Positions 15,478-62,685 of a stretch of DNA of 64,000 bases are shown in pieces (position 1 is the stretch's first letter; each line of letters begins with the position of its first letter). The notes beneath the pieces were generated by a model. The model had not been told where the DNA came from. It made no database searches and was given only the letters and a program-made list of their open reading frames with translations. The translations under genes were made by a program, and so were the position numbers. Location of the stretch: NCBI GenBank assembly GCA_021613535.1, contig CP075492.1, positions 1,116,001 to 1,180,000 on the forward strand, read 5' to 3'. This DNA comes from Adineta vaga (Eukaryota; Animalia; Rotifera).

Positions 15478-18400
15478 ATGGCACGTAACTTGAGACATCG
15501 TTTGTGGGAATCATTTCTTCGGCTAAATCTTTTCAAGAAAACTTCGAGCGATGATCAGACTCTTTCAAAGGAACATATTGCTACTCGCATATATATATGT
15601 TTATTATCTGTATGTGTAGTGGCAATTACAGTTTTTGCTGCATTTATGATTCGAACTGTTGAGAAAACTGAATATGCACCTTCTCAATCAAGATTTTTAC
15701 AATTAACACATAATTATCCAAATACTCTGCATTGTCCATGCTCAAGATCTGATATTACTTATAACACATTTGTCAGTGCCAAAGTCAATTTTCATCATGT
15801 TTGTTCAAGTCAGTTTACTCAACAAATATGGATTGATATGATATTCACAAATGAAAATATTTCGGTCGAGTCTACAGATGATTTTCGTGTTACTCTTAGT
15901 TTCTTCTGGCAAATCATTGCAGGCTTATGTGTCACGAGTAAAAGAAGTTGGGATGATGCTGTTGCAAGTTTTGGTGTATCAAGCATTCTCACTCCAACAG
16001 CCATTGTCGAAGACATCGTTCGAACTCAAGTGCAGACAACACTGAACGAACAGATTGTACTATCTCAAGCAGCAGTAGCTCGTGATTTACTTGCTATTCG
16101 ACGCATGACAAGTGGAAATCAAATTGTATCAGGTTTACAAACAAATTTTTATTTGCGTTATCCACCAGAGGGTTTTGGCTCTACATATGCTACTAAAATG
16201 ACAACTCGAGTGTTCAACGATTGTTCCTGCTTGAGGATCGAAGGTTGTCCACACCCTGCCACTTTCAAAGACAGCCATGGCCATTTGGTCACTGTTCAAG
16301 GAATGATAATGGATTGTTTGATGGTCGATGCTGCACTCGCTTCGACACTCGAATGCTATTATAATCAGACATGTCTTTCTCTCTTGCATCAGCCATTACC
16401 GCTAGATATAAAACCATTGTCGAACAGTTCACTCATACATTTTTCTACACAATCAACTGTGCAAATGCTTTTGGATGAATTGATGATTGACCAAACGATA
16501 AGCAATATCCGCTTCGATTTGTATTATACTCAATGTAATCCTGCTTATTGTTCATATTCTTATACACATCGTTTTGATATTCTTTTTATGTTTACTACAA
16601 TTATTGGTATCTTCGGCGGACTGTCACTCGTCATAAAACTACTTGCACCTTTGATTGCAACAGTTATACTGCGTCGCAAAAATCCAGTTTTATTAGTCGA
16701 AAACGTGACGTATGTACGAGCACCACAACAATATCGGCGTAAGTTATAATTCACTTTTATCGATTTTTTTAAGTAGATCTAAAAAAGTATAACATCTAAT
16801 TTATAGTGAGGACACTAGAGCTCTTCGGTTTCTTGTAAAATCTTGAGGGGTGGGTGTTTGTCTAGGTGATAGTTGAGCAGGTGGCTGAGACAAGGCCATG
16901 TTAATCTCTTGTGACGATGGAATATCTTATGATTCTGTTCTGAGAAATACAAACGTATTTAACAAAAATTCTGTGAGTTTTCGAGCGCGCTGATATTTTA
17001 ATTAGTCTTTTTTTCAATTTATGTTAAATCATTAAGCGTTTCTGGGTTACTCGAAGAGGGAACCTGAAAGTTATACCCACTAATTCTCTTCACTCCTACT
17101 TTCACACACTGCAGCTCACTATTAGGAGCCTCAGGGTTCTTGTTCCTCGGGATTCTATTTCTGCCCGAAACACGAACACATCCGAAAAATCGTCTTTATG
17201 CATGCATCTTTGTACATGCATATGCTTGGGTATATCTTTTCTTTCGTTCTGTGACAAGTCACTATAGAGTCTTGGGTTTCCTGGGAACAGGAAACCGCAC
17301 TGATTTTTGTCTTCATAAGAGAAGAGCTCGAAACTGAGACTCTCACTCACACATCCATATCGGTTTACTTTCAGCAACGACAAAGAAGTTTAAATGGTAC
17401 AGATAATTTTTGTCGCCGCTGTCTGTTCTTCACGTAACAACAATCGAATTTGATTTCAGTGCTTGTGTACTACCGAGTAACATTTTCTGGTGAAAGATGA
17501 AGGTTTAGAAAAAAGAGGATAATGATTCTGACTCGGAGACGGACTCAGAAGCTATTTAATCATATTACATATTGTCGATTATTTTCGTAATTGTAAGAAT
17601 GATTTTCAAAACGAATGACAGTTCAGAAAGGCTCCATAAGGTTTATCCACCTTCATATATGTTCGAATATCTTCGATATTTGTTCAGGGTGCATCAGAGC
17701 CTTAAGTTTTCAGGTGAGTTTTGCGATACACGATATAAAAGGAGTGTTGACATGTGTAGAGATATAAATTTGCCCCTTTCCCCGGCGGGTAGCCATGTAA
17801 CGAATTTTTTTTGTTGAGCTCTCGTTTTCTCAGCAGTATTATAATATGGTATCGATTTTATTTGTAGTTCATATTGTATGGGAACGCGTTCTTTATTTAT
17901 CAAATTACATTCAACAAACAATTGTTTCTTTGAATCTTTTTGAGAATCCAACGCCGCGTATACCTATCAACATTCATCGTGAACAACGTTTAACATGGTT
18001 CTTCATTCTTCTTATCGCTATTTCCTCTATGGCGGTTGGATTTTATATATTTTTTGTTGAACAAAATCAAGTGGTTACAATTGCACATCCATCCCTTGCT
18101 ACCTATCAACAATTGTATAATGATCATCCAAATACATTACAATGTCCTTGCTCACAAATATCTATTCCACATAAAGCGTTTCTCAATGTAACATTTGTTG
18201 TACATCAGATATGTTCGAGTGATCTGATCTCACCAATATGGTTAAACTATCTGGCATCGTTTGATCCGACTCTTGTACCGGCATGGACAGAACAAGACTT
18301 TGCTTTCGACTTTCGTACGGTGGGTGCTTCGTATTTTCAACTTTTAGCTTCTTTCTGCTCAATGGTTCAGATCAACATTGCCGATGCCCAACGTATATTT

Positions 18401-21347
18401 ACCAACACACACTTCATTAATGATCGCGTTCTTGCTCCACCGCTCTTCGCTAAAAAGACTGAGGCTATGATAGATTCCTTTATCAACACAACGCGGAACA
18501 ACTTTGTTCGCACATTCAACTGGGTTAGCATTGCTTTTATCGCCAGTCAGTTTTTCACTGGAGGAAACGTTAATTTTGATATTACTACAGATGAGGATGG
18601 TCAAGTCCATGCTGAGTTTACTGTACGTTCACTCCTTGTTGAAATATCAGACACATCACTGTTTTTTTCGGGACCCTGTGCATGTGGGCAAAGATATTTG
18701 GAGTGCTTCGTTGTACCTGTATTATTTACAAATGCATCATATCTTAATCAATCTGGACTGTATTTATTCTTTCAAGTGATAAACATCGGATGTACACCGT
18801 TAGCTGGATTTATCAGTTCGAAGATCGCGTGGTGGTACAACATCACATATCTGCGATACATCCAAGAAACGTACTCCATCGTCATTAACTCGCAATCGCC
18901 ACCTAACATCGAAGCCCTCAGTGCATCAATACCTACTAACTTTGAAGATGTAGAAACGATCAGTTTAATCCGTGAAATGCTGTTAGAAACAACGATAAAG
19001 AACAATACGCGTTTCGATCAATTCTATAGTGAATGTGCACCTCTCGCTTGTTCATACACAAATGTTCAACGTCGTGAAATTATTGTGGTATTGCTTCTTC
19101 TTATAGCTATATGTGGTGGTCTCTACACAGGTTTTCAAATAATTGTACCGTTGTTTGGCAAACTTCTTTTCTGTTGTATTGATTGGTGGAAAAATCGACA
19201 TATTCAACACGGTGAGTGCTACAATGATTTTTATCAGTGCTGCTTTGAAAGTGATATAAATGAAACCGAAAAATGTAAAGATGAGTGAATTAAAACGTAA
19301 ATCTCACTAATTATCTGTAGACAGATACTTTCATACAAGACTTCACATTTTCATAGCAAGCCTAGTGAGATATTTTATGTGTTGTATGGAAAATTTTCAA
19401 ATTAAAGATATAAACATAGTATTTTTCGGGTAATCAGAATATAACATTTTGGAGGTATCTGGAGACAGCAACGCACTTTCTTTAAACACAAAAACACATA
19501 ATTCAATTCGTTCTCTTTCATGTATAACATACAGTTATACGGTAAAATGTGGATTGTAAAAAAATGCAAACATCACCGATAAAAACAATCTTTTTATTGT
19601 CGTTGAATAATCTTATGAAATATGTCTCCGCCTTTTTAAACTTATGACAATATGTTTGTGTCGATCTTTCCATCATTTCGAAATGGTTTTATTTACAACA
19701 AATGTTGTTGATTTGATTTTATACGTATTTTTTCTAGTACTACCATCAATGAGCGCTCGTCTCAAACATCTTTTAAACGTTACTTATCAATCAATCAAAA
19801 GTATTAATAAGTTTGCGACTGCAACAACTGATGAGCGTTCCATACATCAACAGCAAATATATACTCGAGTTTACTTAGTTCTTTATATAAGCTCTCTTAG
19901 TGTGCTGCTCTTTTATACAGCTATTGTTGAACGTACTATCACCAAAACTTATTTATTATCTTCGATTACGGATTATGAACATCTGGTGAATCTCTATTCA
20001 TATGACGTCAGCTGTCCCTGCACGCATATATCGATTCCTTACAGTGACTTTATCATCGAACTACGAGTGAACGCATACCATGAAGTATGCGTAACGAATG
20101 CGATCGAGTTTATTTTGACATCAGGTAATGTAATGATCTACTTGATATTAGTCTGAAAGGATATTTTCAATTACTGACATAACCTGTAAATATCAGAGAT
20201 TCAAATGCAATTCACTAACAGACATTGTAAAGAAATTGATACACAACAAAATGTTATATTCTTTGTAATATTAGATTTATCGGAACACTTTATTCAGCAT
20301 ATTACTTCTAAACAAATAAAATCCAACGAAACATAAGTGCAAGATACATAACTGAGCAGTACAAAGTAGTCTTCTGAATTTAATCACTCTGATAGAATAG
20401 TAGCAAATGTTTAAACCTTGACATATCTATGATATATCTTTGTAGACGTTATATACTTTCCTGGTGAGGATGTTCAAAGCACAAGTAGTTTCTTATCGTG
20501 GAAGTTATTCTTTATCGACTCTCTCAAACAACTTTGTTCGTTGGCACAAGAAAGTGTCAACAATAGTATTGACGTATTTCTTACTTCCACTTTGCTCACC
20601 AGTCACCTTAAGTCTCCTGTTCGATTCATGGACGAAATGAACGAGACTTTAAATCAGTTCCAAAAACGAATACCAAATGCATTTGCACAAACGTTAGATC
20701 TTATTCGAATAACTGCACAAGGAAACGCTCTTCTAGCTATGTTTTCATCAAACTGGGATTTCGCAGTGGCTGAAAAAGACCGCGGAAGAAATGTTTCGTT
20801 TCTTAATGTACCTGTCATTCATAAAAATATTGAACAAAATACAAGTTGTTCTTGTGTCACTTTACGAACTTGTACAATACCACTACAAATTAATAGTGAT
20901 TATGGAATGGCTAGTGTTGATGGCATGGTATTTGGTTGTTATTTGCTGGAGACAGTACTCCTTTCATCGATGGCTTGTTTCTATTCTGAAACATGCATCA
21001 CCAACGTTCGAGATTCACTAGGTTCATTTCCTTTTACTCCAGAAGGTTTTGTCAAGCTGAACGATTCATCGGTACGATTCAGTATCAATGACACAATCGA
21101 GACAATGGCTTACGAACTATTTATCGAAGCATGGACGAGAAATGTATCTTATGAAAGATTTTTTAATAGTTGTTCTCCAAATTATTGTATTTATACGTAT
21201 CATTATCAATTTGATGCACTTGAACTGTTAATGACATTTCTAAGCGTGTTTTCTGGTCTATCTCGTGGAATTCAGTTCGTTGTTCCTCATCTGATCAAAA
21301 TATTAAAAAATATTAAACGTCGCTTTCGTATCACGCCACTTCAATGA
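15478..21347 (+). CDS. Membrane protein of three tandem (TM - Cys-rich ectodomain - TM) units; exons 15478-16738, 17868-19211, 19738-20124, 20446-21347; about 1297 aa
   Basis: All three introns are phase 1 with GT-AG ends and join the listed ORFs in frame (3894 nt in total). Each unit repeats LNLF/INKF, T-x-x-(Y/F) plus TM1, CPC(S/T), an internal CxC, CxPxxCxY and a TM2 with (G/S)GL. An acceptor at 15466 suggests an unidentified upstream or UTR exon. Confidence 0.82.
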
Positions 21348-21611
21348 TTTTATATTCGTCAAATTTGCTTTAAATTGTTTTACTAAAAACATATAAATGA
21401 CTCTTATCTATATATTCAAGTAATTCGTTTGTTCAGAAGTTTCGATTCTTTTTTTTAATAAATATTATTATCCAAGCTCTATTCGACTACCTTTCTGCTA
21501 TTAAAGCCACACTTTTCAATTTCGGATCACAGTATCAAATATTTCATCAAGTTATGATACAAAATGCATGTTTACGATAAACAATGAACTAAAGTGTGAA
21601 TTATCCTTACA

Positions 21612-22185: not shown

Positions 22186-23933
22186 TCAAGTGAGCACCGT
22201 CGCCATTGTTCGTTGAAGTAAACGTGAAATAATCGTTCCTACTCGAAATAGATTAGCTGGTTCAACAGGATGTCGACATAATGGACATGTATTAGCCGTT
22301 CGTAAAGCGTCTAACATACAATCGAAGTGAAATTGATGTCTACCTGGACATGGCCATTGCCTGTAGAATCGATTTGATTGAAAATTTTCCAGACATATCG
22401 AACAATTTTCTAAAAGCATTTCCTTTGTAGCTATTTGTGGGCCAGTCAAACGAAATTGTGCGATAAATTCAGGTGATGCTGATGTAATTCGTTCCCAAAT
22501 TCTACCAATGTCATGTTCATATATACGCTGCTGATATTCAGTTTCTAGATAAATCAGAAAATTTAAATGACGTTGTTGTTCTTGTTGTTGTTGTTGTAGA
22601 GCTCGTTTCTGTTCGAAGCTAAAAGAAAACACGTCAATTGAAATTTGTTTTATCTGTTTTTTATTTAAACATACCAAACTCGGTACTCTTCATTCAAAAA
22701 CATTAAACGTCCATGTAACCATTTCGCTGATGAAGAATAACAATTATTCATAAAGAAGGGAAAAGAAATATATTCATGATCAACTATGATCCAATAATTT
22801 TGTACATCTTTGATTGTATGAAGAGGAATGAGTAAAAATGGAACATTTTCATAAAATTTTTCTAAAATGTTTGGAGAATTTTCATCGAAATTAACTAAAA
22901 ACATGAGAAGATATTTCTCACGAAGTATAAATAGACAATCATGATAATTATTCTGATAGGTTGTTTCCATCAGAAGATTATCTAGATCCTCCAAAGAAAT
23001 GATGTCTGTTTTATTTAATTGTTGCATTGCTAATAAATTTTGATTTGATGAAGATAATGGAGTAAGAATAGTTGTAAAGAATTGTTTTATATGAAGTAAA
23101 TTCTTCAATACGAAATAAATAAAAAGAGCAACAAATAGATAAGAAAAATAAGGAGTATAATAATATGAACTATCAAATAATCGAACATCATCATCTAGAG
23201 CATGACGAGTACCATAAACAATTCCTGGAAATTCATTTACATTTTTCGGTTTATAAAATGTTCCAACAATAACACCACATTTGGACATAAATGTTGTAGT
23301 AAATATTTGTGAATTTTGACGATAAAGATTTTCAATCTTCGTCATATACATTGATTTTTCATACCAGGTGGAAATTTCTACTGGAGAAACTTCTAAGTGT
23401 TTGACAATACATCGTAAAGTGTTAATATTCAAAGATTGAAAATTATATAAATGATGTACATCATATTTTGAGTGTTCGTATGAGCCAAATTTTAGATAAA
23501 GACGTTTATATCGTGTAGTAATGGTTGGTTGAATGACTTGATTATATGTGTATGTTACTCGACCATATGGCTCTTGACGATAGGTGTGCTGGAATGAACT
23601 ATCATGGTAATGATTAATACAATTTTCACCTAATTCAATTTGAATATATTCCGGTTGAAAGAAAAAGCAATGGAATGAAAAATAGGATTTAAAACCAAAT
23701 AGATTGTAATTTTTATCTAAATAAGTTTGAAATTGTTGTGTATTCATTGAAAATGGTCCTTTCCATGCATTGTAAATACGATTATGACATTGAAATAACA
23801 TCAAAATGAGAAAAGGACAAAATAGACAGCACCATTTCATGAGAATGCATCTAAACATTTCCTTTCTATGGGCTTTTAAGCGTTGCTTATCAATACTCTG
23901 TAATAGAGATAAACACGAAACTCTCATTCTCAC
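22186..23933 (-). CDS. Membrane-associated RING-H2 E3 ligase-like protein; 2 exons (23933-22675, 22618-22186)
   Basis: A 56-bp phase-2 intron (TG|gtatgt...tttag|C) joins the two ORFs. C-terminal CSICLENF...PCPGRHQFHFDC...CPLCR. Hydrophobic segments near the N-terminus and mid-protein. Start codon uncertain. Confidence 0.8.
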
Positions 23934-46889: not shown

Positions 46890-49800
46890 ATGAATACAAT
46901 GTCGATTATTGTTGAAGGTAAAGAAATATTTCCGATCTTTCTACTGACTTTATTTCGATTGACATTGATAACATGTCAATTTAACATGTACAATATCCGA
47001 GAAATAGTTGATAATAATACATTAGAATATGATTGTTTGGATTATTATGGTTATTATGAAACGAAATTAGCTAATGAAGACTTATATGATGCCATCAATG
47101 AAATCATATCATTTTGTATTCGTCCAGTGAATCCATCTGATGATCCAATCGATACATTTGTTCATCCACTTGCTCGTCGATTATCATTTGAAGATGTCAG
47201 TTTAATGGGTATTACTGTAGAACAACTTCGTTCATGGTCAATTCCAAAAGCAACAATTGAAGATTATCAACGTTACCTAATGAATTTGAAAACAGTTTCA
47301 TTAAATGATTATTTCTATCATTGTACTTTTCCACAATTTGGTTTTCGATGTCAATATTCATTTGGATCTCGTTATAAACAAGGAATGTCTTTTAATGATA
47401 TTGTTGATGCAACATATCAAAGTAAACAATCCTATTCAGAATTACAAACAAAAACAATAATACAAGCACCATTACCATGTTATGTTTTACTTTCATGCCA
47501 TCGTAATGGAATAGAATGGTGTCTCGATTGGCGAGAGATTTGTGATGGAATTGTCGATTGTTTTGATGAAAGTAGTGATGAAGAATATTGTTTTCTAATG
47601 GAAATCAACGAATGTAAAGAAGATGAATATCGATGTCATAATGGAATGTGTATTGCAGAAGAATTATGGAATAATGGTGAAGGTGAAGCAGATTGTCTTG
47701 ATCGATCTGATGAGATTTTAGTTGCTCCATATTTAGATATGTGTTATCAAGATGTATCATTTCGTTGTAAAGAACATTCATGTCGACCAGGTGGTGGAAC
47801 ATTTTCATGTGGTGATGGTCAATGTGTAATGAGATATAAACATTGTCATAGTGGTCGTCATCAATTATTAATTGAATCATTGATGAAAGAAAATGATTTA
47901 GATAAAGAATGTTGGATAACAATGATTTGTTTAACTAAACTTATCGAACAAATTCATGGTATATCATGTTATATATGGTTAATGGATGATTTTACTAATG
48001 AATATCTTTCAAAATGTCCTTCATTTTTTCAATTTCCATCTAATACTATTTATTCGAATCATGTTCGTTTTTTCTATGAAAATATTCATTTACGAAATAA
48101 TTTAACTCTTAATTTCACACCTAATTACATATGTTATAATGTCGAATTATGTGAATTTCATTCAAATAGTTTAACTCGTGATGATCTTATTTGTTTGAAA
48201 AAATTCAATAAACATATACAATGGGATAATACTGTTGAGAATCCTTGGAGTGAATTAATATGGTGGATTGAACAAGATTTTCGTTCTTGTTTAATATCAA
48301 CAAGTTTTATTTCAAATCAAATGATATATTTTAATTCTTCTACACTTTATCAATGTTCAAAATCATTGAAAATAATCTCTTTTCATCGTTTCAAAGATAA
48401 GATGAAAGATTGTATTGAAGCTGATGATGAAAATTCTTCTCTAAATTGTTTACTTAATGATCGATATCGAATTCGATGTGGTGGAGCAAATGAATGTTGG
48501 TCACCCATACAAAAAGAAAATGCTTGTCGATCGAGTCGTGAACAAAGTCAAGAAATTCTTCCATTTCAAAGTTTTTGTGATGGGATACCTCAACATTTTT
48601 ATTATAATCTCAATAGACAATTACGTTACGATGAAGATGAATGTGATATAGATAAATTATGTAATAATATGTATTCACGTTGTGATGGACATTGGGCATG
48701 TCGAGATGGACGAGATGAATGGAATTGTAGTCAAACAATATGTCCAATAAGAAGTCATATATGTATATCGCCTGTTAATTATACAATATTTTGTTTACCA
48801 TATACTCGTGTCAATGATAGAAATGATGATTGTCTTGGAGCAACAGATGAATCAAAACAATGTCATATGACATTTAATTCTTATGATAATCTTATTCGTT
48901 TTCGATGTTTAAAAGATGAAAGATGTTTAAGATCATCAGCATTATGTAATGAAAAAGTTGATTGTCCTATTTTAAAAGATGATGAACAATTTTGTAAAAA
49001 ATATCCTTTATTTACTTGTCAAAAAAATATATCAAATCAACGTAATGAAATTGAACAAATTTTATGTGAATTAAATGAAAATAATCAACATCGAATTAAA
49101 TATTTCTCTATTATTACATCATCACCTTATCCTTCATTTAAACAAAATGAATTTTTAGAAATAAATAAAGAAAAAGATGAATCAATAATAATAAAAAAGA
49201 AAATCATATTTTCCAAAGAAGATCAACAATGGTCACATTATTGTAATCATGGTATAATGATTGAAAAACAATTAAATAATAAAATCTTATATAAATGTTT
49301 ATGTCCATCTAATTATTATGGTCATTTATGTCAATATGTAAATGAACGAATTAGTTTATCATTAAAATTAAGTTCAACTAATCGATATGAAATTTATGAT
49401 ATTATTATTTTATTAATTGATGATAATAAAAATGAAATTATAACATTTCATCAATTTCAATATATTACAAAAGATAGTTGTACAATAAAATTTAATAGAA
49501 TTTTTTTATATTCAATAAGACCAAAAAATAATTCATCAAAATATTTTATTCGAATTGATATTATTGAAAAGAATTCAATGATTTATATTGGACATTGGTA
49601 TTATTCAATTCCATTCGTATTTTTACCTGTAAATCGTTTGAGTATTGTATTAAATTTATCATCAACTATTATTCAAACACAAACAATAAGAAAATGTCAA
49701 AGAAAATGTTTAAATAAAGAACAAGAATGTATTGAATATATAAATAATAAAGATAAATCATTTTGTCGATGGAAAACTTCATCAATGATTTCACATCAAT

Positions 49801-51587
49801 GTTTAACAAATTCAATATTTATTGGTTTTAAACAAAATTCTAATCAATCAATTTGTGTATTATCATTAATTAAATCTTTATGTTTAACAAATCCTTGTCA
49901 AAATCATGGTCAATGTATTGAAAATAATGAAAATTCATTTGAAAGAAATTATACATGTATTTGTATTGATGAAAGATATTATGGAAAAAATTGTCAATAT
50001 AAAAAATGGCAATTAGATGTTTCATTTGATAATAATATTTATATACCAAAAAACTATTTAATTGCATATTTTTATACAATATCAAATAGTTCACAACCAC
50101 AAAAAACAATTCTTCTTCGAAAATTAACACTTTTTCAACAAATTATTTCATTTTATATATCAATTCCTTATCATTTAGTATTTATTCAAATAAATTCAAA
50201 TAAATATTATCTTATTTATCTTCAATATTCATCATCTATGTATATATTAACAAAAATGACTTTAAAACAACAATGTCATTCAATTAATCAATATGTTAAT
50301 TCAACAATATTAAAATTACATTTTTATGAAAGAATTATTTATTTTCATCGACTTTGTTTAAATAATTGGAATTTAATTTGTTTTATTGATCAAATGTATT
50401 TATGTTTATGTACAAAAGATCATCATGCAAATTGTTTACCATTTAATCAACAAATTTATTCATCGGAAAATCATTTTCAATGTTTAGTAAATGATCAATA
50501 CTGTTTAAATGACGGTAAATGTTATCAGGATCATCCTTATTGTCCATCAACAAAAATATGTTTATGTTCTAATTGTTTTTTTGGTCAACAATGTCAATTC
50601 TATGCTAAAGGTATTGGTTCAACATTAGATGAAATTTTAGGATATGAATTTATTGAGAAAAAACCTTTTTTCTTTCAACCATTTCGTATTCAATTAAGTA
50701 GTGGAATAACAATATTTTTATTTCTAATTGGTATAATTAATGGAATATTATCATTAATGACATTTACACAAAAGAAAGTACGTCAAGTTGGTTGTGGATT
50801 ATATTTATTATCATCATCAATTAGTTCATTATTAACTGTAACATTTTTTACAATAAAATATTTATTACTTTATTTATCTTATCAAGATATATTAAATCGT
50901 GAAATAATATTAATTATTAATTGTCGATGTATTGAAATTTTATTAAAATTATGTTTATTTATTGATAATTGGTTAAATGCTTGTGTTGCTATTGAAAGAA
51001 CTTATTCAGCAAAACAAGGTTTATTATTTAATGGAAAACAAAGTAAAAGAATTGCAAAATCAGTTATTTTATGTATAATTATTATAAATACAGCACTTCT
51101 TGTTCCACATATGATTTTTCTTCATGTATTTGAAGATAAAATTGAAGGAAGAAGTTGGTGTGTTATTCATTATAAAACATGGATTAAATTATATACAATG
51201 ATGATGATATTTATTCATTATTTTATTCCATTAATTATACAAATTAGTTCAACAATAACAATAATAATACTTACAGCACGACAACGATCAACAGTACAAA
51301 CAGAAAAAAGTTTTTGGAATCATTTAAAAAGAAAAATTCTTAAATATAAACAACAAATAATAAGTCCAATTCTAATTATATTAATAACATTACCACATTT
51401 AATTGTAACAATTATATTAGATTGTAATAAATCATCACGATTATTTTGGTTTTTTCTTATTAGTTATTTCTTATCATTTATTCCAGCAGCATTTATATTT
51501 ATTATATTTGTTATTCCATCTCCACTTTATCGAAAACAATTTCAACAATGTATTTTACATTTACGACGAAGAATCAAAAGATATTAG
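46890..51587 (+). CDS. LDLa / EGF-repeat 7TM receptor (paralogue of 3-3239), intronless
   Basis: Likely start MNTMS with signal-like segment (ORF is open from 46704). LDLa motifs (CLDWREICDGIVDC, CDGHWACRDGRDE), EGF motifs and 7TM with VAIER. Confidence 0.88.
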   Translation: MNTMSIIVEGKEIFPIFLLTLFRLTLITCQFNMYNIREIVDNNTLEYDCLDYYGYYETKLANEDLYDAINEIISFCIRPVNPSDDPIDTFVHPLARRLSFEDVSLMGITVEQLRSWSIPKATIEDYQRYLMNLKTVSLNDYFYHCTFPQFGFRCQYSFGSRYKQGMSFNDIVDATYQSKQSYSELQTKTIIQAPLPCYVLLSCHRNGIEWCLDWREICDGIVDCFDESSDEEYCFLMEINECKEDEYRCHNGMCIAEELWNNGEGEADCLDRSDEILVAPYLDMCYQDVSFRCKEHSCRPGGGTFSCGDGQCVMRYKHCHSGRHQLLIESLMKENDLDKECWITMICLTKLIEQIHGISCYIWLMDDFTNEYLSKCPSFFQFPSNTIYSNHVRFFYENIHLRNNLTLNFTPNYICYNVELCEFHSNSLTRDDLICLKKFNKHIQWDNTVENPWSELIWWIEQDFRSCLISTSFISNQMIYFNSSTLYQCSKSLKIISFHRFKDKMKDCIEADDENSSLNCLLNDRYRIRCGGANECWSPIQKENACRSSREQSQEILPFQSFCDGIPQHFYYNLNRQLRYDEDECDIDKLCNNMYSRCDGHWACRDGRDEWNCSQTICPIRSHICISPVNYTIFCLPYTRVNDRNDDCLGATDESKQCHMTFNSYDNLIRFRCLKDERCLRSSALCNEKVDCPILKDDEQFCKKYPLFTCQKNISNQRNEIEQILCELNENNQHRIKYFSIITSSPYPSFKQNEFLEINKEKDESIIIKKKIIFSKEDQQWSHYCNHGIMIEKQLNNKILYKCLCPSNYYGHLCQYVNERISLSLKLSSTNRYEIYDIIILLIDDNKNEIITFHQFQYITKDSCTIKFNRIFLYSIRPKNNSSKYFIRIDIIEKNSMIYIGHWYYSIPFVFLPVNRLSIVLNLSSTIIQTQTIRKCQRKCLNKEQECIEYINNKDKSFCRWKTSSMISHQCLTNSIFIGFKQNSNQSICVLSLIKSLCLTNPCQNHGQCIENNENSFERNYTCICIDERYYGKNCQYKKWQLDVSFDNNIYIPKNYLIAYFYTISNSSQPQKTILLRKLTLFQQIISFYISIPYHLVFIQINSNKYYLIYLQYSSSMYILTKMTLKQQCHSINQYVNSTILKLHFYERIIYFHRLCLNNWNLICFIDQMYLCLCTKDHHANCLPFNQQIYSSENHFQCLVNDQYCLNDGKCYQDHPYCPSTKICLCSNCFFGQQCQFYAKGIGSTLDEILGYEFIEKKPFFFQPFRIQLSSGITIFLFLIGIINGILSLMTFTQKKVRQVGCGLYLLSSSISSLLTVTFFTIKYLLLYLSYQDILNREIILIINCRCIEILLKLCLFIDNWLNACVAIERTYSAKQGLLFNGKQSKRIAKSVILCIIIINTALLVPHMIFLHVFEDKIEGRSWCVIHYKTWIKLYTMMMIFIHYFIPLIIQISSTITIIILTARQRSTVQTEKSFWNHLKRKILKYKQQIISPILIILITLPHLIVTIILDCNKSSRLFWFFLISYFLSFIPAAFIFIIFVIPSPLYRKQFQQCILHLRRRIKRY

Positions 51588-51645
51588 ATATATTCTTGTT
51601 TGTTTTCTCAAACAATTTATTTAATAATAAAAAATGTAAAGATAA

Positions 51646-51687
51646 AGGTGTGATGTGGATTAATGAGAGTAGAGTCTCACACACACC
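51646..51687. repeat. Telomere-like hairpin (degenerate)
   Basis: AGGTGTGATGTG-gattaatgagagtagagtct-CACACACACC. Confidence 0.7.
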
Positions 51688-52241
51688 ATGGTAATAATAA
51701 TAAAAAGAAGCAAAGAAACCTATTAGAAACGTAAAACTAATTTGATCCTCGTTTTTTTCTGTGGATCTGATAATGAAGAAAGAGATTATATATTTAATTT
51801 TTACAATTTTCAATGAATTTTCTAAATGAATAATCTTTCCTTCACAGATTCTATTTGAAAACTCTATCTATATCCATATAATCATATTCATATTACATCC
51901 CTTAACTATAATATTTGACCCAGGAGAAGAAAAAATGTAATGACGTGTAAGAATGTCCTCTTAGAGTCAAATTTGTTTTTTTTTTAACACAAAAGATCTT
52001 CTTACTTAATAATATCCGAATAAACACGGAGTTCTTTGCCAGAACGATGAAAACATTAATATTTAAGATTAAATTTAATATTTCATTTTTCTATGGGCTT
52101 ATCGTTTAAAGGATATGCAAATATGTCATTTTCATAGTTCCGGTTGATATTCTTTCAAACTTGAATAATATCAAATATTAATTCATTTACATAAAAATTG
52201 TCAGAAAGAAGTTTCATCAAAGTAAAACAAAACGAGTAAAC

Positions 52242-54418: not shown

Positions 54419-57400
54419 ATGCATCCTAAAACATTGTTTTATTGGATCTATGATTATGTACTTCATTATAATCTTTTCGTATCCGAAGAAGATGAGCTCG
54501 ACGATAATGAGAATGAACCACAAGATCAAACAATTATTATTCAACATAAAAAATACTCAACATGGTTATATATTCTTCTTTTTATCAGTAAGTAGAACAT
54601 ATAATTTAGAAATCGAGATATGTGATTCACGTTCAAAATCCCAATTGAATATTATTTCCCTTGAGATTTTATCCATAATCTTGTGTCTTATTGATTTTTT
54701 CTTTCAGTGTTTTTCTATGTATTCTTTTACATTGCTATGGCCAAACCTCAGCAACGTACAATCGTGATCTCTGATGTTACAGAGACTAGTATTACTAAAC
54801 TTAATCTTGAATATAAAAAAACTCTTTCATGTCCATGTTCAACCATTTATGTACCACCTAAACAGTTCGGTCTCAATCAAATAAAACGTCATCCTGTTTG
54901 TACAAGCATCTTTGTTAGTCAACAATGGATTGAAAATCTATATTTATCAAATGCCAGTCAATATAGAGCAACAGATTTTCGAACAACAGCTCATTCTCAG
55001 GTAATTGAATATCGTTCTTTTTTTCTTCATTCTACACCCTAGTCAATTACTTCTCGAAATTTCAAATGTTTATTCATAAAAAAAACATTTTTCTAATTTT
55101 TTTACACCGAATATTTGAGTTACTCTCCATGATGTTCTATAGAAAGTTTCCTCATTTAAATTGAGCTTCGTAGTTATTAACTTATAGCCAAACTATTAAT
55201 GTAGCATTTGTATTTGTACTAAGAGTACAATTGGGATAAATGAATAAATAAAATATCGAAAGATCAAGGTAAGGTCTATGTCGTAAATAAATCAAAAATT
55301 CAAATTTTCTTTGTAAGAATAAGGAAGATCAAAAATAATATCATGCAGATAGTTTTCGGTATTTTGACGATGCACTTGTTTTTCAATAGTAATACTTTTC
55401 TTATGTGTATTTTTCACTAAACGTTTTGAACGTTCACGGTGATAATTCATCTAATTTATCAAGTCTGAGCTACTAATATGCGGACTATCTGTCTTTACGT
55501 CGTTAGTAGGAACAATATTTTATTAAAATATGATGATTATTGAATTATGAATTCGACGATCATCTTTCAAGAACTTTCGTTCACTTGAAAATCGATGTAT
55601 CTAATTATTTACTGTATTATATGAAGTAGCATCTTACTCATGAACAGTAGTTAGACATAGTAACGAATGAGTTTTTTATGTATGGCTGTCACGCAGTTTA
55701 TTCATGCAAAAATAGACGTGCTAAAAAATTTCATTAACGGTTCTTTCTAATCGAGGCTTCCGAAATGGTGCCCGGTATTTCAATATACAACATATGGTGC
55801 TGCTTTGATTAGCACAATATGTAAGATAAAATGACTATTACGCGAATTTATTTATTGACGTATGTAAAAATGAAAAAATGTTCTTTGACTCTCAATCTTT
55901 CCTTATCCACAAACGTGACAGATATTAATCAATTAATTTGTAATAACTAATTAGATGAATTATGATAAACATTAAAGAAGTATCGTTTATTAGATAAGAA
56001 CAATGCAATAAATATGTTTTTACTAAACAATAAATATAAAATTGACTTTCTCTTTGTTTAGTTTCAATTTCTAGCTGATTTTTGTTCTCTTGTCCACGAT
56101 ATAATTGATCAAGTAGAGATTGAAATTGAGAATTACGAATTCACTACAGTCGAACTTCTATCAAATGAACAACTTCAATCACAAATGGATATTATTTTGG
56201 AATCAGTTAGAAATAGTGCATCTACTCGATTAATGTCATTTATCAACTATATTAACACAAATGCTCGATCTAACAATTTCATTTCTGCTCTCAATACAAA
56301 TACAATGATTGTAATCGAGTTTCAAAATGACCAATACATTTCCAAGAAAAGGCCAACAATTTACAAAAACTTCTCATTAGACTTGGGAAGATTGGAATAG
56401 ACTTGCAATGATGTGTTTACCCTGCATTTCCTGACAAAACTATAAAGAAGAAAGTATGCTCATATATCATGATCCCAATGAAGTACCAGTGGTTGGATTT
56501 TTCTCATCATGTACACCGTTTGAAGGTTTTCTTTCCAGTACACTCAATTGTCTACATGATAATAAATGTCTTGAATTATTACTCAAATATTTTCCATTTC
56601 ATAATCGAGTATGAATAATAATTTTGTTATTATTAATTTATATTTTATTCTTTATAGATATATTTCAATTTAAATGATTCTATTCTATTTTCAAAAAAAG
56701 CAAATCTTTCCTTTTATGAACATTTGGAAACTCTCTTCATCGATGATTGGTCAATAAAAATTAATTATTCTCAATATTTCCAACAATGTAAACCTTCATT
56801 TTGTTCATATGAAACAACAGATCAAAAAAATATTTATTATGCAATTACTATTCTCGTCAGTCTCTATGGTGGATTCACGATTATACTTCATTCGATAACA
56901 CCACATATTATTAGTGTGATATTGAAATTCAAATCTCGATCATTAAATACCAATGGTAAATGATTCGTATATTTTTCAAAGAGAATAAACAAATATGAAT
57001 TTGATTTTTTTTTTCTATTATAGTTAATTATATGGAATGTTTACGAAAATATGGAAAATTCCTCAAACAATTAAATTTATTTAAAGTGGCTACTGATCGA
57101 ACAATAAACGGTGTTAAACAACAACAGATTCTCACACGTATCTATATAATTCTATTATCGGGTATAATTATTTCTATTTTAAATAGAATATTTTTTTCTC
57201 TATTTTATTCTTAATCTATTAAAATTTTTCATTTGAATTGACAACGAACGCTCGACATATCAACTCACTTTACTCTCGACTGTAGAAGACAGGTATTTTC
57301 TTCGTGTACTGATAGTGAGACGAATTGATATAGCAAGTTTATATACGAGAAAACGATTCAAATTTTTTTCTCATCCACACCCTCGCTAAAGTCGAGAGAA

Positions 57401-60400
57401 TAATTTTTCTATTAAAAATATGTAAATTTATTTTCATTATTAGGTTCATTGTTGATCCTTCTTTTATTTCATACATTTCATACTGAAATAGTCATAATCA
57501 CCGAATCAAATCCATCACTTGACATTTACAAAAATTTAGAAAATTCATATTCAAATACGCTGAAATGTCCTTGTTCATTGATGATAATACCTTACAAAAA
57601 CTTTCTTTCACTTACTCCAATTATACATGAAATGTGTTCAAGTGATCTTGTTGATGATCGTTGGATAACAGTATGGAAAACTTTAAGAGGTATATTTATG
57701 TTACATGATTGGCGTGATCAAGCTTCATCTCAATTTCAATTGTTATCTGATCTTTGTCGATTGACTAATCGAACAATCGATGACGCAGTGCGTCGATTTC
57801 TTTTAGAATCTTTTGCTGCTTTAAATGTTCTTAACAAAGAAGATTTCGAAGCACAATTATATAAAATACTCAATCAATTTTTTCAATCAATCACTACATC
57901 TTTTCGTGTGCTTGTCGATACGACACGTCTTTTTACTCAAGTCGATCAGCCTTATATGAGATGGGTACACCGTAATTACAGAACCTCTTATACAGATCTG
58001 ATCATCAATCTTTGGAAAAATGAAACAAATAATAAAGAATCATTGAACGTAAGAAAACAAAACACCTAAATTCTCAAAAAATAAGAGATTACATTTGAGT
58101 GAGAATTTTCTATATGAATAAAAGATTTGTATGAATTGACATGTGAACAATGAAAACAATATTTATTGTCTTTTTTTTAGTTTACGTTCTCTTTGGCTGG
58201 AATAAAAAATATCGAGTCAGAATCATTCAAATGCATTTGTGCGATGGATCCTGATTGTCAAAATTCAGCTCGTTTTTATAATACTATATTTGAGTTAGCA
58301 CCTTTTTTTGACGTAGATCGAACTTACATTTTAACAGAGTTCGTCGAAAGATGTTCTACAGTCGATTCTCTTCTATTCTCAACACTTGAATGTTTTTACT
58401 TTGACTCTGATTGTTTCATGCTTTTAATACGTGCCGCACAAAACGCTCAGCGTGTATCTTTTGATCTATCAAGATTTTATATTCGTCCTTTCGTGTATAA
58501 TACAACGTTTAGTCATTTTCCACTTCATACTACAATTAAAACAATAGTTGACGAATTAATGATCGAACAATGGAATCCAGTTGTTTCCTATGAACGTTTT
58601 TATCAATCATGTGCGCCAAAATATTGTTCTTATTCACGGCGAATTCGCACTAAGAATACTATTGAACTGATAATGTCATTAGTATCAATGATCGGTGGTC
58701 TTACTACTTCACTAAAATTAATTACACCTTATCTTGTCAAAGTATGTTTTTATTTATGGTCAGTCATCATCAGAAAACAACGAGAACAAGAACCACAATC
58801 GGAACAACAAAGTAGAATTATTGAATCTCTTGAAAATATAGTGTATAGATTATTTTCACAAGTTAAAGATCTATATCTGATACAGTTCGTATCTGATGTG
58901 AGAGAGAAGAAAGTCTTGCATTGTTTTATTGATTTGAATTTACATTTTGATTGTGAGTTAAAATCAATACCTTAAACTTAATGTTCCTTAGACTTATCGT
59001 TCGCTTGTGACCGAACTGAATCAGATTCTGACAGCTATAGCCACGCACCAGTCTATAATGTTGTCCAACCACTATTTTAGTAGTCGTTCTCCTCTGAACT
59101 TTCCATTCATATCAGAAAATATTATATCTCGAAGGTGTGGATATGAATAGAGACACTGAATTGTTTCTTTGTTTGTTTACAGTTCCTCAACAAAGTTGGG
59201 ATCGATTAAAATGATCATACGAAATCTAATTACACTGTTACGAATTCAATTGATTAACTTAAACATCTTCTCTTCACGAGATTTTGATAGTCGAATGGAT
59301 CGAATAACAACTAAACGACTTGGTCAATGGTCTACTCGTTTGCATTTTATTCTACTAATCAGTGGCATTGTTATATTAATTCTTTACACTATCATTCAAC
59401 CTCAGACAATTACGAAAGATTTCCGTGAACCACCTTTCAATCTCTATGAACATCTGGTAGAAAGATTGGAAATCAACTCAAATGTTTATGTTCATCTATT
59501 GCATCGATACATAAGAAATTTGTCACTATTGAACCACGATTTCATCAGGTAAACAGAGATAAGTGTTGATGTCATACTCACAGACATTAATATATAAGTA
59601 TATTAATTTGCGATTGAGAATCAATCTAATATTCTTCTTCTTTTCTTGTGTTTTCAGATTTGTTCAAGCCCATTTGCTTCGGATCAATGGCGAATGAATA
59701 TTACATTCGGTCTCACTAGTAATTTATCCACTGAAATAAGAACAGATTATCGTCGTTTTCTCTCAGCTCATCTGCAATTTCTTCATGGTCTATGTCAACT
59801 CTCTACCCAATTAGTTAATAACTTCGTCGATCAATTCCTTACTTCATTATTCATCACTACACAACTTCTACCTGAAAAGAAGTTTTTTCAACGTCTCAAT
59901 TTAACGATTGAACAAGGTAAATCCAATATTCCAATCAAATTCAATCATCTTCTCTTCTTGATTCGCCGCATAAACCACGGTAATGCTATCATCTCTACAT
60001 ATGGAACGAATTTCGAGTACATTGTTCCTTGGGATAGACTTTACAATGTATATGCACCTGTTCAAGCGATAATTTATAATGATAATTGTTCCTGTGGATT
60101 ACATTCAAATTGTATAACTCAAGCAAATTTCACAGAGCCAAACTCTTCTAAACTGATCTCACTCATAGGTTTGAAAATAGGTTGTACACCAAGTGAATCC
60201 TTTCTTGCTTCAACTCTGGAATGTTTCTATAATCAATCGTGTATTGATCACATCGAAAAATATACGTTGTACACAAATAGTCAGAATTCTTCTCATCCTC
60301 TTTCTATCACAGCCAATCACTTTTCAATCAATACTACAGTATCAGAATTGATACAACATCTGTTCGTTGATGAATGGTTGATAACAAACAATTATATAAC

Positions 60401-62685
60401 CTATTTTCAACAATGTAAACCATTTCTCTGTTCATATACATATATTCAACAATTCAGTGTCTTGTATATTGTAACTACTCTACTTGCTCTTCAAGGTGGT
60501 CTTACCATTGTTCTCAAATGGATATCACCTAAAATAATACAAATCATAGCAACTATTTATTATCGTCGAAAGCAACGCACAACATTGTTCAACCTACTTC
60601 ATCTAACGAGTTGATGTCTGTTCAGATTGTTAATGCAAACGTTAATGATTTCACTTCGAATTTAGAATCAATACCAAGAAATGAAGTACTAGTGTATGTA
60701 TCATTCATCTTTATTTGAATAGTAATTAATGATTTATATGTTTAGAACAAACTTACCATCATCAGCTCGATGCTCTCTTCAAGCCATTATAATATGTATA
60801 ATATTAGTATGTGTGATAATCGTTCTCACTCTATTTTCCATCTACTTTCCTCGACAAGGTAAAAATCAGTTTGTACTGATGATTATGTTACTAAGAATTC
60901 ACTTTTGATTTGTTAGCTCCTATTACAATGAGACCGATGATCAACACTACTTCAGAAACAACATCAACGACAACAAAAACAAGTTCGTTACATCTACTTC
61001 TTATTTTCTCTTCAGATTTAGTATAGTCTAGATTGTGAATGTAAGAGTGAAGTATGTTCATGTTCGCATTTATCTCCTTGTTAATATCAATACGAGAGAA
61101 AATGTCTTATGTAAACTACACTAAAGACAAATTTTAAAGTCTAATGAAGTAGTATGAATTCCTTCGTAATAGATCAAATAACTTTTGTTTTATATTAGCT
61201 AAGAAACATATACCTAAAATAGAGACTACTGCATCGTTAATCCATTTGTTATTTCCATATCACATTTAGATCTGATTCCAGTGACAACTAATCATAGAAG
61301 ATAATAACATAAGAACAGATTTCGAGCAATATATTCAAAGCCCATTTTCATTTACAAGATACCGTTTCAACTGACGAACAATTCACTTGCAATTTATTCC
61401 TTTTTTTTGTATTCAGATGTAGTTTACGTCCTACACTGAAGGCGACTGACTTTAGTATCGTACGCACAATGACAGATCTCATGAGAACATATAAACACTT
61501 CCCGCAGAATTGTTTCTATGTAGAGTAGATCATATCAGGATGGTGGTTGTTGTGAAGAGTATTGTGTTTTTCGTTTTATTCATATCAGCTTGTCATCTAA
61601 AGTTTCAAACAATCTATACTGATACTGAAAATATTCGACCAATATCACCTGTCATTGCTGATTTCAATGGCGACGATCAAGTCGATCTTGCTTTTTACTG
61701 TGTGCGAAACAATAATCTACATGTATTTCTTGGAGATGGCAATGGGACTTTTAAAGAAAAAGTTGCATTTGCAATTGGATATGTTGAATTGATACAAATT
61801 ATCACAACCGATTTTAACCATGATCATCGAGCCGATCTCGTTTTCACTAATTATCGACAAGGGCAAATAGGTCTTTTCCAAAGGTATGATAATGGAACTT
61901 TTCAAACATTCAATATCTTATCAATTCCATTTCGTGATTATCCAATTAACATCGCTGTAACTGACTTTAATGATGACGATAATACTGATATCCTCATCTT
62001 CAATATTTACACTACAAGCATTTATATATTTCTAGGACATGACGACGAAACATTTTCATGGTTACCGTTAGCATATTTCTGGTCCGATGTATTTGAAATG
62101 AAGTCTATTGATACCGCTGATTTGAATCATGATGGTTATCTTGATATTATTGTCTCGACTGCATTAGTTGGAGGTATTACTGCAATTCTAGGAGATGGAA
62201 ATGGAACTCTTGGAAAAATGATGTTCTCCTACACTCAAAGCGCAGTGTTCGATGATGTTCTTATTCGAGATTTCAATGGTGATACTCGATTAGATCTCAT
62301 TGTTTCGTCTAAATCTTTAAACGATATTCGCGTGATGTTGGGATATGGTAATGGTTATTGTCATTTGAATAAAACGTTTCACATTGAAAGGCCTACGCAT
62401 CCATTTAAAATTGCAACTGGTGATTTCAACTGTGATGGTCAACTAGATATTGTTTTCAGTCAATCTGATCCATTTCGAATAAGTGTACTAGTTGTTGGTT
62501 TAGGAAATGAGATTTTTGATATACAAACAGTGTTGTTGATGGAATCCAGACGTGACTATATTTGGATCGATGTCGATGATTTCAATGGTGATAGTTATGA
62601 TGATATAATTGTTGTTGATGGATCATCTGGTTGTATCTTCATTCTTTTAAATGTCTGTGAATGTTGCATACATGAAAATCTATAG
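54419..62685 (+). pseudogene. Second three-unit 2-TM/Cys-rich membrane protein gene, fused through an extra TM and a Thr-rich stalk to an FG-GAP domain; carries a stop (56398-56400) and several frameshifts
   Basis: Exons approx. 54419-54587, 54708-55000, 56062-56608, 56658-56955 (unit 1); 57024-57161, 57444-58048, 58181-58811 (unit 2); 59183-59548, 59659-60693 (unit 3); 60746-60858 (TM); 60917-60982 (stalk); 61589-62685 (FG-GAP). Same unit motifs as 15478-21347. Lesions near 56400-56470, 59210, 59465 and 60580. Confidence 0.7.
61589..62685 (+). CDS. FG-GAP/VCBS-repeat beta-propeller exon (intact reading frame)
   Basis: Seven D(F/L)NxDxxxD repeats with LGDGNGTF-type linkers; acceptor at 61588. 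Confidence 0.85.

Follow-up and report, generated by a model that had tools for sequence, protein, structure and literature searches.

DEG/ENaC/ASIC channels (PF00858) are trimers of separate subunits, each of which has cytosolic ends, two transmembrane helices (TM1 and TM2), a disulfide-rich extracellular loop, and strands joined to both helices. Their ectodomain is composed of palm, beta-ball, finger, thumb, and knuckle, and they carry an HG motif and a G/S-x-S sequence. P2X receptors (PF00864) are recognized by their ectodomain fold, and the proton-activated chloride channels PAC/TMEM206 by a beta-sandwich in the ectodomain. Three tandem homologous repeats with two transmembrane helices each occur naturally in one chain in SLC25 proteins of the inner mitochondrial membrane, where they form a pseudo-threefold six-helix bundle; these repeats measure about 100 amino acids (aa) and have small matrix helices and no disulfide-rich ectodomain. 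Fused subunits are also found in the four-domain Nav/Cav and the two-domain TPC/K2P channels, in which the fusion allows the positions to diverge. To our knowledge, a receptor of the trimeric type whose three units are naturally concatenated is not known. Here, we describe a gene on the forward strand of a 64,000-nt stretch of the genome of the bdelloid rotifer Adineta vaga (contig CP075492.1, C3:1116001-1180000, GC content approximately 30%; hereafter the window; all positions are counted from its first letter). The gene extends from 15478 to 21347, is intact, and contains three homologous units, each with two transmembrane helices and a large Cys-rich loop. It represents a huge, undescribed protein family, which carries three modules per chain.

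Gene structure

The gene consists of four exons and three GT-AG introns, all of which are in phase 1 (Table 1). When joined, the exons give 3894 coding nt and 1297 aa with no internal stop, as counted locally. A first-pass annotation, made from the letters of the window, had combined four open reading frames (ORFs) into one chain of about 1297 aa with exactly three homologous units and had proposed a concatenated trimeric channel with DEG/ENaC-like topology. All four ORFs were located where that annotation had placed them, and the three-unit chain was supported by near-consensus splice sites, by the number of units throughout the family (see below), and by the similarity of the units to each other (unit 1 vs. 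unit 2: E 2e-30, 23% identity, 426 aa; unit 1 vs. exon 4 of unit 3: E 4e-30; unit 2 vs. unit 3: E 3e-11). Sequence searches for this gene were run with its exons one at a time or with relatives. Exon 1 matched positions 1–422 of the unit profile with 606 bits, and unit 3 scored 76 and 176 bits with exons 3 and 4, respectively.

The four exons are matched in collinear order by an annotated protein of Adineta ricciae (P0093, 1278 aa), in which they correspond to residues 1–399 (exon 1, 56% identity), 421–861 (exon 2, 51%), 872–993 (exon 3, 55%), and 1009–1277 (exon 4, 53%). While the identity of each exon to the same-position unit of P0093 lies between 51% and 56%, it amounts to 21% to 30% for the other positions. 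At the first boundary, splicing yields the residues ..QQYR-L-HIVWERV..LNLF, and the pattern ..R-x-[H/R]IVW-x-R..LN[LI]F is common to the closest paralogues L016 and L011. The counterpart introns of these two paralogues have a length of 58–59 nt, and the paralogue L002 has an uninterrupted ORF there. The phase of intron 2 was computed from the frame of unit 2, and the junction script independently chose the same acceptor. Unit 3 is split in the same way in L002, L011, and L016 (profile positions ~112/131). Signals of the AATAAA/ATTAAA type follow downstream of exon 4 at 21457, 21500, and 21681. The sequence of intron 1 occurs once in the genome (six chromosomes, 100.8 Mb) and is non-repeat; a transposon insertion as its origin was rejected because of this uniqueness. 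The locus very probably encodes one chain of three units.

Table 1. Exons, introns, and transmembrane segments of the three-unit gene and position of the second family gene in the window. A slash marks the exon–intron border.
Feature	Position	Strand	Details
Exon 1 = unit 1	15478..16738	+	ATG 15478; N-terminal LNLF helix, then TM1, Cys-rich ectodomain, TM2, and a short tail of basic character
Unit 1 TM1	15595..15651	+	aa 40–58; hydropathy 2.86; helix in AlphaFold2 model
Unit 1 TM2	16579..16635	+	aa 368–386; hydropathy 2.37; G-x-x-G-G-L
Intron 1	16739..17867	+	1129 nt, phase 1, GGC/GTAAGT...TTTGTAG
Exon 2 = unit 2	17868..19211	+	Profile positions 3–423, 374 bits
Unit 2 TM1	18002..18058	+	Hydropathy 2.49
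Unit 2 TM2	19079..19135	+	..IAICGGLY..; hydropathy 2.59
Intron 2	19212..19737	+	526 nt, phase 1, CACG/GTGAGT...TTTTCTAG
Exon 3 = unit 3, N-terminal part	19738..20124	+	Pre-TM1 helix, TM1, CPCT region; profile positions 3–112
Unit 3 TM1	19857..19913	+	Hydropathy 1.68
Intron 3, within unit 3	20125..20445	+	321 nt, phase 1; GT 20125, AG 20444–20445
Exon 4 = unit 3, C-terminal part	20446..21347	+	Stop codon 21345–21347; profile positions 131–403
Unit 3 TM2	21225..21284	+	..LSVFSGLS..; by homology to unit 1 TM2; under hydropathy threshold
Second family gene (paralogue)	54707..62685	+	Three units in ~10 exon pieces (54707–60587, unit profile), then FG-GAP propeller region (61510–62685; FG-GAP_3 E 2.5e-32)

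Number of units and distribution of the family

With unit 1 alone as query, 87 relatives were retrieved, and every named one belongs to Adineta or Rotaria and is labeled hypothetical. An exhaustive HMMER search of 1.84 billion representatives resulted in 4053 clusters (50% identity) at E ≤ 0.001. In the A. vaga genome, a first look revealed 1230 matches to the unit profile, that is, about 1200 units or exons in approximately 100 Mb. Open frames of 846–857 aa, and one of 1345 aa, occur among the 99 scored matches. According to the named homologues, the family is known so far from bdelloid rotifers alone.

Twenty other A. vaga loci (up to 10 kb each) were fetched and scanned with the unit profile in six frames. 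All 20 fit three units on the same strand, and 17 show all three inside the fetched stretch. The other three were truncated at 10 kb: according to the genome match list, the third unit of L010 and L013 lies immediately beyond the stretch, and L014 contains two units within its stretch. L001 is one ORF of 1345 aa (G000:C1:16809181-16813215, reverse strand) holding three units, and in seven further three-unit loci, two units share one ORF and the third follows past a short gap. A stand-alone single-unit gene was not present among the 20 loci. Exactly three full units were counted in 63 of the 150 best-scoring of the 4053 cluster representatives, a set in which additional units would push the score up, and four full units in none of them; the others were partial or two-unit ORF calls. 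Among the genome matches listed, adjacent units on one strand never formed a run longer than three. Three units per chain is the rule of this family, which we regard as practically certain. That the unit number would not vary freely was a prediction of the first-pass annotation, which had also assigned exactly three units to a paralogue near 54.4–60.7 kb; the unit profile confirmed this count (Table 1).

The best 99 genome matches are located almost entirely in the outer parts of the chromosomes (e.g., C3 0.2–6.2 and 14.4–19.3 of 20.4 Mb; C1 13.8–16.8 of 18.1 Mb), and the centers of the six chromosomes are nearly free of them. Two genes on C3 (G000:C3:223843-226499 on the reverse strand and G000:C3:530629-533285 on the forward strand) have near-equal scores, share open frames of 454 aa and 617 aa, and lie in opposite orientation about 300 kb apart, which looks like a recent inverted duplication. 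The public model of a close paralogue on the same chromosome (P0058, NCBI I4U23_016804, 662 aa) merges pieces of units 1, 2, and 3, suggesting that automatic annotation often mis-splices members of the family.

Unit junctions and age of the triplication

The ORF was continuous at 10 of 41 unit junctions and interrupted at the remaining 31. For 29 of the interrupted junctions, the best in-frame GT-AG candidate was a phase-1 intron of 41–3669 nt, usually with GTAAGT and a T-rich acceptor, although the candidates had been ranked without regard to phase. The coincidence of unit boundaries with phase-1 introns, which had been claimed for the window (16738/17868 and 19211/19738), holds for both boundaries and extends to the family. 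Since a boundary is either a phase-1 intron or seamlessly open, it is presumably spliced in the mRNA; the pattern is that of a conserved intron that has occasionally been lost.

When 194 units were arranged in a tree, their position labels (1, 2, or 3) changed 25 times, compared with about 90 times for shuffled labels. The nearest neighbor was the same-position unit of another gene for 167 units, a unit of the same gene for 19, and a unit at another position for eight. Given these position-specific neighbors and the existence of three-unit proteins in Rotaria, the triplication is older than most of the radiation of the family, including the split of Adineta and Rotaria. For seven of the 64 genes represented in this tree, among them P0089 and P0088, the units were nearest to units of their own gene. 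The TM1 strings of P0089 are identical across its three units, and the TM2 strings are identical in units 1 and 2. Such units point to possible internal gene conversion or re-triplication, the unit count always being three.

Sequence features and topology of the units

The motifs noticed in the first pass (CPCS, CxC, GC, CxPxxCxY, and GGL or SGL within TM2) are present in the units of the window, with CPCT as a variant of CPCS. In the alignment of 171 units, which underlies the conservation values given here, 12 Cys columns were conserved at 87% to 100%, and the TM2 consensus was I-G-L-x-G-G-L (G-x-x-G-G-L) with G380-G381-L382 at 83% to 93%. Further conserved positions are N17 and F19 of LNLF, T36 and R37 where TM1 begins (TR-x-Y), and CxPxxCxY right before TM2. 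The GGL of TM2, the TR-x-Y of TM1, and N17 were kept at all unit positions. The highest mean information was found in the two transmembrane segments, a measure that is inflated by hydrophobic composition. The window gene displays the family set, namely three tandem units with LNLF, TR-x-Y/TM1, CPC...C...C, CxC..C..C..C..C, CxPxxCxY, and TM2 GGL. The 12 conserved Cys residues probably form six disulfides per ectodomain. In unit 2 (18767–18799, ..SKIAWWYNITY..), both Cys of an otherwise conserved STLEC-x5-C pair are lost together. This simultaneous loss suggests that the two residues are bonded to each other and that the unit positions are free to diverge.

Six transmembrane helices had been expected for the chain. 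Five of them (TM1 and TM2 of units 1 and 2, TM1 of unit 3) were identified by hydropathy, and full-length three-unit relatives show six hydrophobic helices, whereas TM2 of unit 3 was assigned by homology. Termini and linkers are rich in K/R, the loops are acidic, and each loop contains 4–8 N-glycosylation sequons. Because of the charge bias and the sequons, the loops are predicted to lie outside and the ends in the cytosol, which fits a per-unit topology with the N-terminus inside, TM1, the loop outside, TM2, and the C-terminus inside.

Predicted structure

AlphaFold2 models were obtained for unit 1 of the window (78 sequences; pLDDT 87.1, pTM 0.73) and for a three-unit chain, the latter from an alignment of 50 three-unit proteins with P0107:1-1200 as first row (pLDDT 86.3, pTM 0.80). 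The modeled unit begins with a short helix, followed by a long TM1 helix that continues into a strand, an alpha/beta region around CPC, two helices of 30–36 residues, a beta region rich in Cys, and a strand leading into the long TM2 helix. With a pTM of 0.80 over 1200 residues, the relative placement of the three units appears to be confidently predicted.

In an ESMFold2 complex test, the three ectodomains were supplied as separate chains together with three controls. The ectodomain complex scored 0.54 vs. 0.15 for the best of the three controls, a weak pass. Fifty-one of 78 solved complexes and two of 108 mismatched pairs attained the mark of this test; with scores of 0.60 or below, only five of these 78 solved complexes attained it, as did all four passing mismatches (of 180). 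In the ectodomain runs, at least 10% of the contacts agreed, and the partner pLDDT was at least 74. The score of unit 3 dropped to 0.15 when unit 1 was replaced and unit 2 was kept (single control), which hints at a contact between units 1 and 3 and, by this, at a closed rather than a linear arrangement. The three units rather probably pack as a closed pseudo-trimer, and the predicted ectodomain is likely a new fold.

Comparison with known families

No Pfam family was assigned by hmmscan to the four exon products (E ≤ 1), ASC and P2X remaining silent, or to the three-unit relative P0107; in the C-terminal extensions of subfamily relatives, Pfam recognized propeller domains. A profile of 78 units did not match any sequence in the PDB at E ≤ 10, and Rfam gave no match for the window gene or P0107. 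The best Foldseek hits in the PDB had E values of 0.98 (unit model) and 1.2 (chain model) and were not meaningful; for FaNaC1, PDPNaC1, and P2X7, E values were above 6 with TM-scores of about 0.1. A BFVD search, wide VIA searches with both models, and a second VIA look did not yield a meaningful fold match either. The shape search in the ESM Atlas returned rotifer clusters only (TM-scores 0.76–0.79), the next best being Wzz with 0.29, and all 30 clusters returned by the ESM feature search were from rotifers and without Pfam assignment. In full-text literature searches, neither this family nor any naturally concatenated trimeric channel was found described.

The bdelloid units resemble DEG/ENaC/ASIC subunits in their cytosolic ends, two transmembrane helices, disulfide-rich extracellular loop, strands joined to TM1 and TM2, and the number three. 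In contrast to these trimers of separate subunits, the three units are located in one chain, HG and G/S-x-S are absent, the consensus ahead of and at the start of TM1 reads LNLF ... TR-x-Y, and the ectodomain consists of two long helices and a Cys-rich beta region instead of palm, beta-ball, finger, thumb, and knuckle. Neither the ectodomain fold of P2X nor the beta-sandwich of PAC/TMEM206 was found. Membership in DEG/ENaC, P2X, or PAC was not detectable, because topology and the number three are the only common features and neither a sequence nor a fold match was obtained. The DEG/ENaC-like character assumed in the first-pass annotation did not extend beyond topology, as Pfam, PDB sequences, and Foldseek did not indicate a relationship to DEG/ENaC, ASIC, or P2X. 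The likeness to the G/S-x-S filter was not sustained, since TM2 conserves G-x-x-G-G-L but not the Ser following it, and the structural match to trimeric channels, on which the proposal also depended, was not found by Foldseek. Homology to DEG/ENaC or P2X is very unlikely. The idea of a pre-linked heterotrimer stood in part: the units are old and position-specific as predicted, and the pTM of the chain model and the weak association of the ectodomains are consistent with it; the match to trimeric channels is missing.

SLC25 proteins share with the bdelloid family the idea of three two-helix repeats per chain, but differ in repeat length, matrix helices, location, and the lack of a disulfide-rich ectodomain; PX[DE]XX[KR] and PF00153 were not found in the bdelloid proteins, for which Pfam gave no match. 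As in Nav/Cav and TPC/K2P, where fused subunits let positions diverge, position-specific orthology was observed here, but the fold is different and the repeat number in those channels is four or two. The best non-rotifer shape match, the Wzz polysaccharide co-polymerases (PF02706), combine, like the bdelloid units, two transmembrane helices with a base domain and with a long helical hairpin that lies outside the membrane.

Transcript data

Four RNA-labeled runs gave only scattered contigs of 151–211 nt, which did not cover any joint and left the exons almost bare. Contigs from possibly-RNA runs lie within intron 1 (X1: 17018–17168 and 17233–17383; X13: 17397–17605); this region (17018–17605) has no match in Rfam and is unique in the genome. 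These contigs could stem from carried-over DNA, from unspliced RNA, or from a small transcript. A contig look-up for the 423-aa product of unit 1 returned no record, and for P0121, it returned a contig of genomic rather than transcript appearance. A receptor that is used in few cells would be expected to show low bulk expression.

The second family gene and the neighborhood

Besides the two family genes, no further units were detected in the window with the unit profile; about 15 kb upstream of the three-unit gene and 33 kb downstream of it are free of matches. The second gene carries an FG-GAP propeller region behind its three units. In the relatives of this subfamily that were checked, a seventh transmembrane helix precedes the C-terminal FG-GAP propeller, and P0251, P0295, and P0283 possess C-terminal beta-propellers of the NHL, SGL, or SBBP type in place of, or alongside, FG-GAP. 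The propeller fusions put the large loops outside the cell and point to extracellular recognition. FG-GAP and NHL repeat proteins are among the lineage-specific expansions of A. vaga and were thought to function in defense, chemosensation, or cell communication (Arkhipova et al., 2013; PMC3846280).

Directly downstream of the three-unit gene, an ORF of 163 aa encoding a RING-H2 finger (zf-RING_2, E 4e-11) is located on the opposite strand (22186–22677). The region right upstream of the second family gene (48001–52000) is very AT-rich (GC content 22% to 23% vs. approximately 30% elsewhere).

Discussion

The overall reading that we tentatively favor is a pseudo-threefold single-chain receptor, putatively ionotropic and chemoreceptor-like. 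Its module would comprise a cytosolic LNLF helix, TM1, an ectodomain of about 310 aa with six probable disulfides, and a TM2 with G-x-x-G-G-L. The window gene would give rise to a six-helix glycoprotein of about 1297 aa with three anciently diverged copies of the module, which may fold together into a heterotrimer-like (pseudo-threefold) body. This body would expose a variable, sometimes propeller-tipped, outer surface recognizing external ligands, and the signal would pass through the transmembrane bundle itself, corresponding to an ionotropic, chemoreceptor-like function. Transduction by the transmembrane bundle is favored because a cytosolic signaling domain is lacking and because the transmembrane helices and cytosolic flanks are the most conserved parts. 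Ion conduction is a possibility that we put forward with reserve, and a channel mechanism is preferred by a narrow margin to a non-conducting recognition receptor. That several hundred bdelloid genes encode a new kind of receptor, a pseudo-heterotrimeric ligand-gated channel with a new ectodomain fold serving as the main chemosensory or environment-sensing repertoire, is a speculative extension and on present evidence rather unlikely.

Several observations weigh against the favored reading. The ectodomain association was only a weak pass, likeness to known channels in sequence or structure was not found in the searches described above, and the RNA-labeled runs did not provide transcripts across the joints. 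Introns 1 and 2 (1129 and 526 nt) are long for the family, in which most junctions span 41–250 nt, and in-frame ATG codons near the start of units 2 and 3 (17846 and 19750) would make separate translation possible for this copy. Conserved transmembrane Gly residues in a G-x-x-x-G-like arrangement are a classical helix-packing motif, and the conserved Gly residues of TM2 may serve helix packing instead of lining a pore. Propeller fusions and the huge copy number suit immune or adhesion receptors equally well.

The most serious alternative leaves the three-unit chain in place and assigns it a non-channel role as a recognition, adhesion, or innate-immune receptor or as a scaffold, in which the transmembrane helices anchor or pack the ectodomains and partner proteins signal. 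We consider it a realistic possibility. It would account for the extracellular FG-GAP and NHL propeller fusions, the very large and divergent family on the chromosome arms, the lack of likeness to any channel, and the packing character of the G-x-x-x-G-like motifs in TM2, and it agrees with the functions in defense, chemosensation, or cell communication assumed for the FG-GAP and NHL expansions of A. vaga (PMC3846280). However, a cytosolic signaling domain is absent, the transmembrane helices and juxtamembrane motifs are the best-conserved parts of all three units beyond what anchoring needs, and adhesion does not demand strictly three units. A true but highly divergent DEG/ENaC/ASIC or P2X member, triplicated in one chain, would share the two transmembrane helices, the Cys-rich loop, and the cytosolic ends, and the modeled strands leaving TM1 and entering TM2 as well as a Cys pair and a Tyr ahead of TM2 are in line with those channels. 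Nevertheless, the silence of Pfam ASC and P2X, the missing PDB sequence match, the low Foldseek TM-scores, and an ectodomain with two helices of 30–36 residues and another strand order make this explanation the most improbable of those considered.

Two further explanations concern the copy in the window itself. Its units might be separate genes or result from gene fission, with two-helix products assembling after translation. Each unit ORF stops soon past the proposed donor, AATAAA/ATTAAA signals are found past the stop of unit 2 (19289 and 19401), a 423-aa product of unit 1 alone is recorded in a protein collection, and the gaps between the units are long with the ATG codons mentioned above. 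Yet both boundaries have a strong phase-1 donor and acceptor, the junction residues are common to paralogues with short introns and without intron, the A. ricciae orthologue is annotated as one protein of 1278 aa, no polyadenylation signal is found up to 350 nt from the stop of unit 1, and none of the 20 loci contained a stand-alone single-unit gene. "Proteins" of 420–450 aa would be the expected output of an ORF caller from genes split by introns, and separate genes are considered improbable. Even less probable is that the copy is silent or decaying and has no function of its own. The missing transcript contigs over the exons and the enlarged introns would be compatible with decay, but the exons are open across 1297 codons, the conserved Cys, GGL, and LNLF are retained, and low bulk expression would be expected of a receptor confined to few cells.

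If the pseudo-threefold body of the favored receptor reading is real, the family would provide the first natural pre-linked trimer of the type with two transmembrane helices and a large ectodomain, a natural version of the fixed-stoichiometry experiment that artificial ASIC, ENaC, and P2X concatemers imitate. If the channel reading also holds, it would be a trimeric counterpart to the four-domain Nav/Cav channels. The confidently predicted fold makes structure and function directly testable. Having neither a Pfam model nor a solved relative, and with no literature description found, the family is among the biggest unexplained ones in bdelloids, an animal group famed for its odd genome biology, and it could explain how these animals sense or recognize their surroundings.

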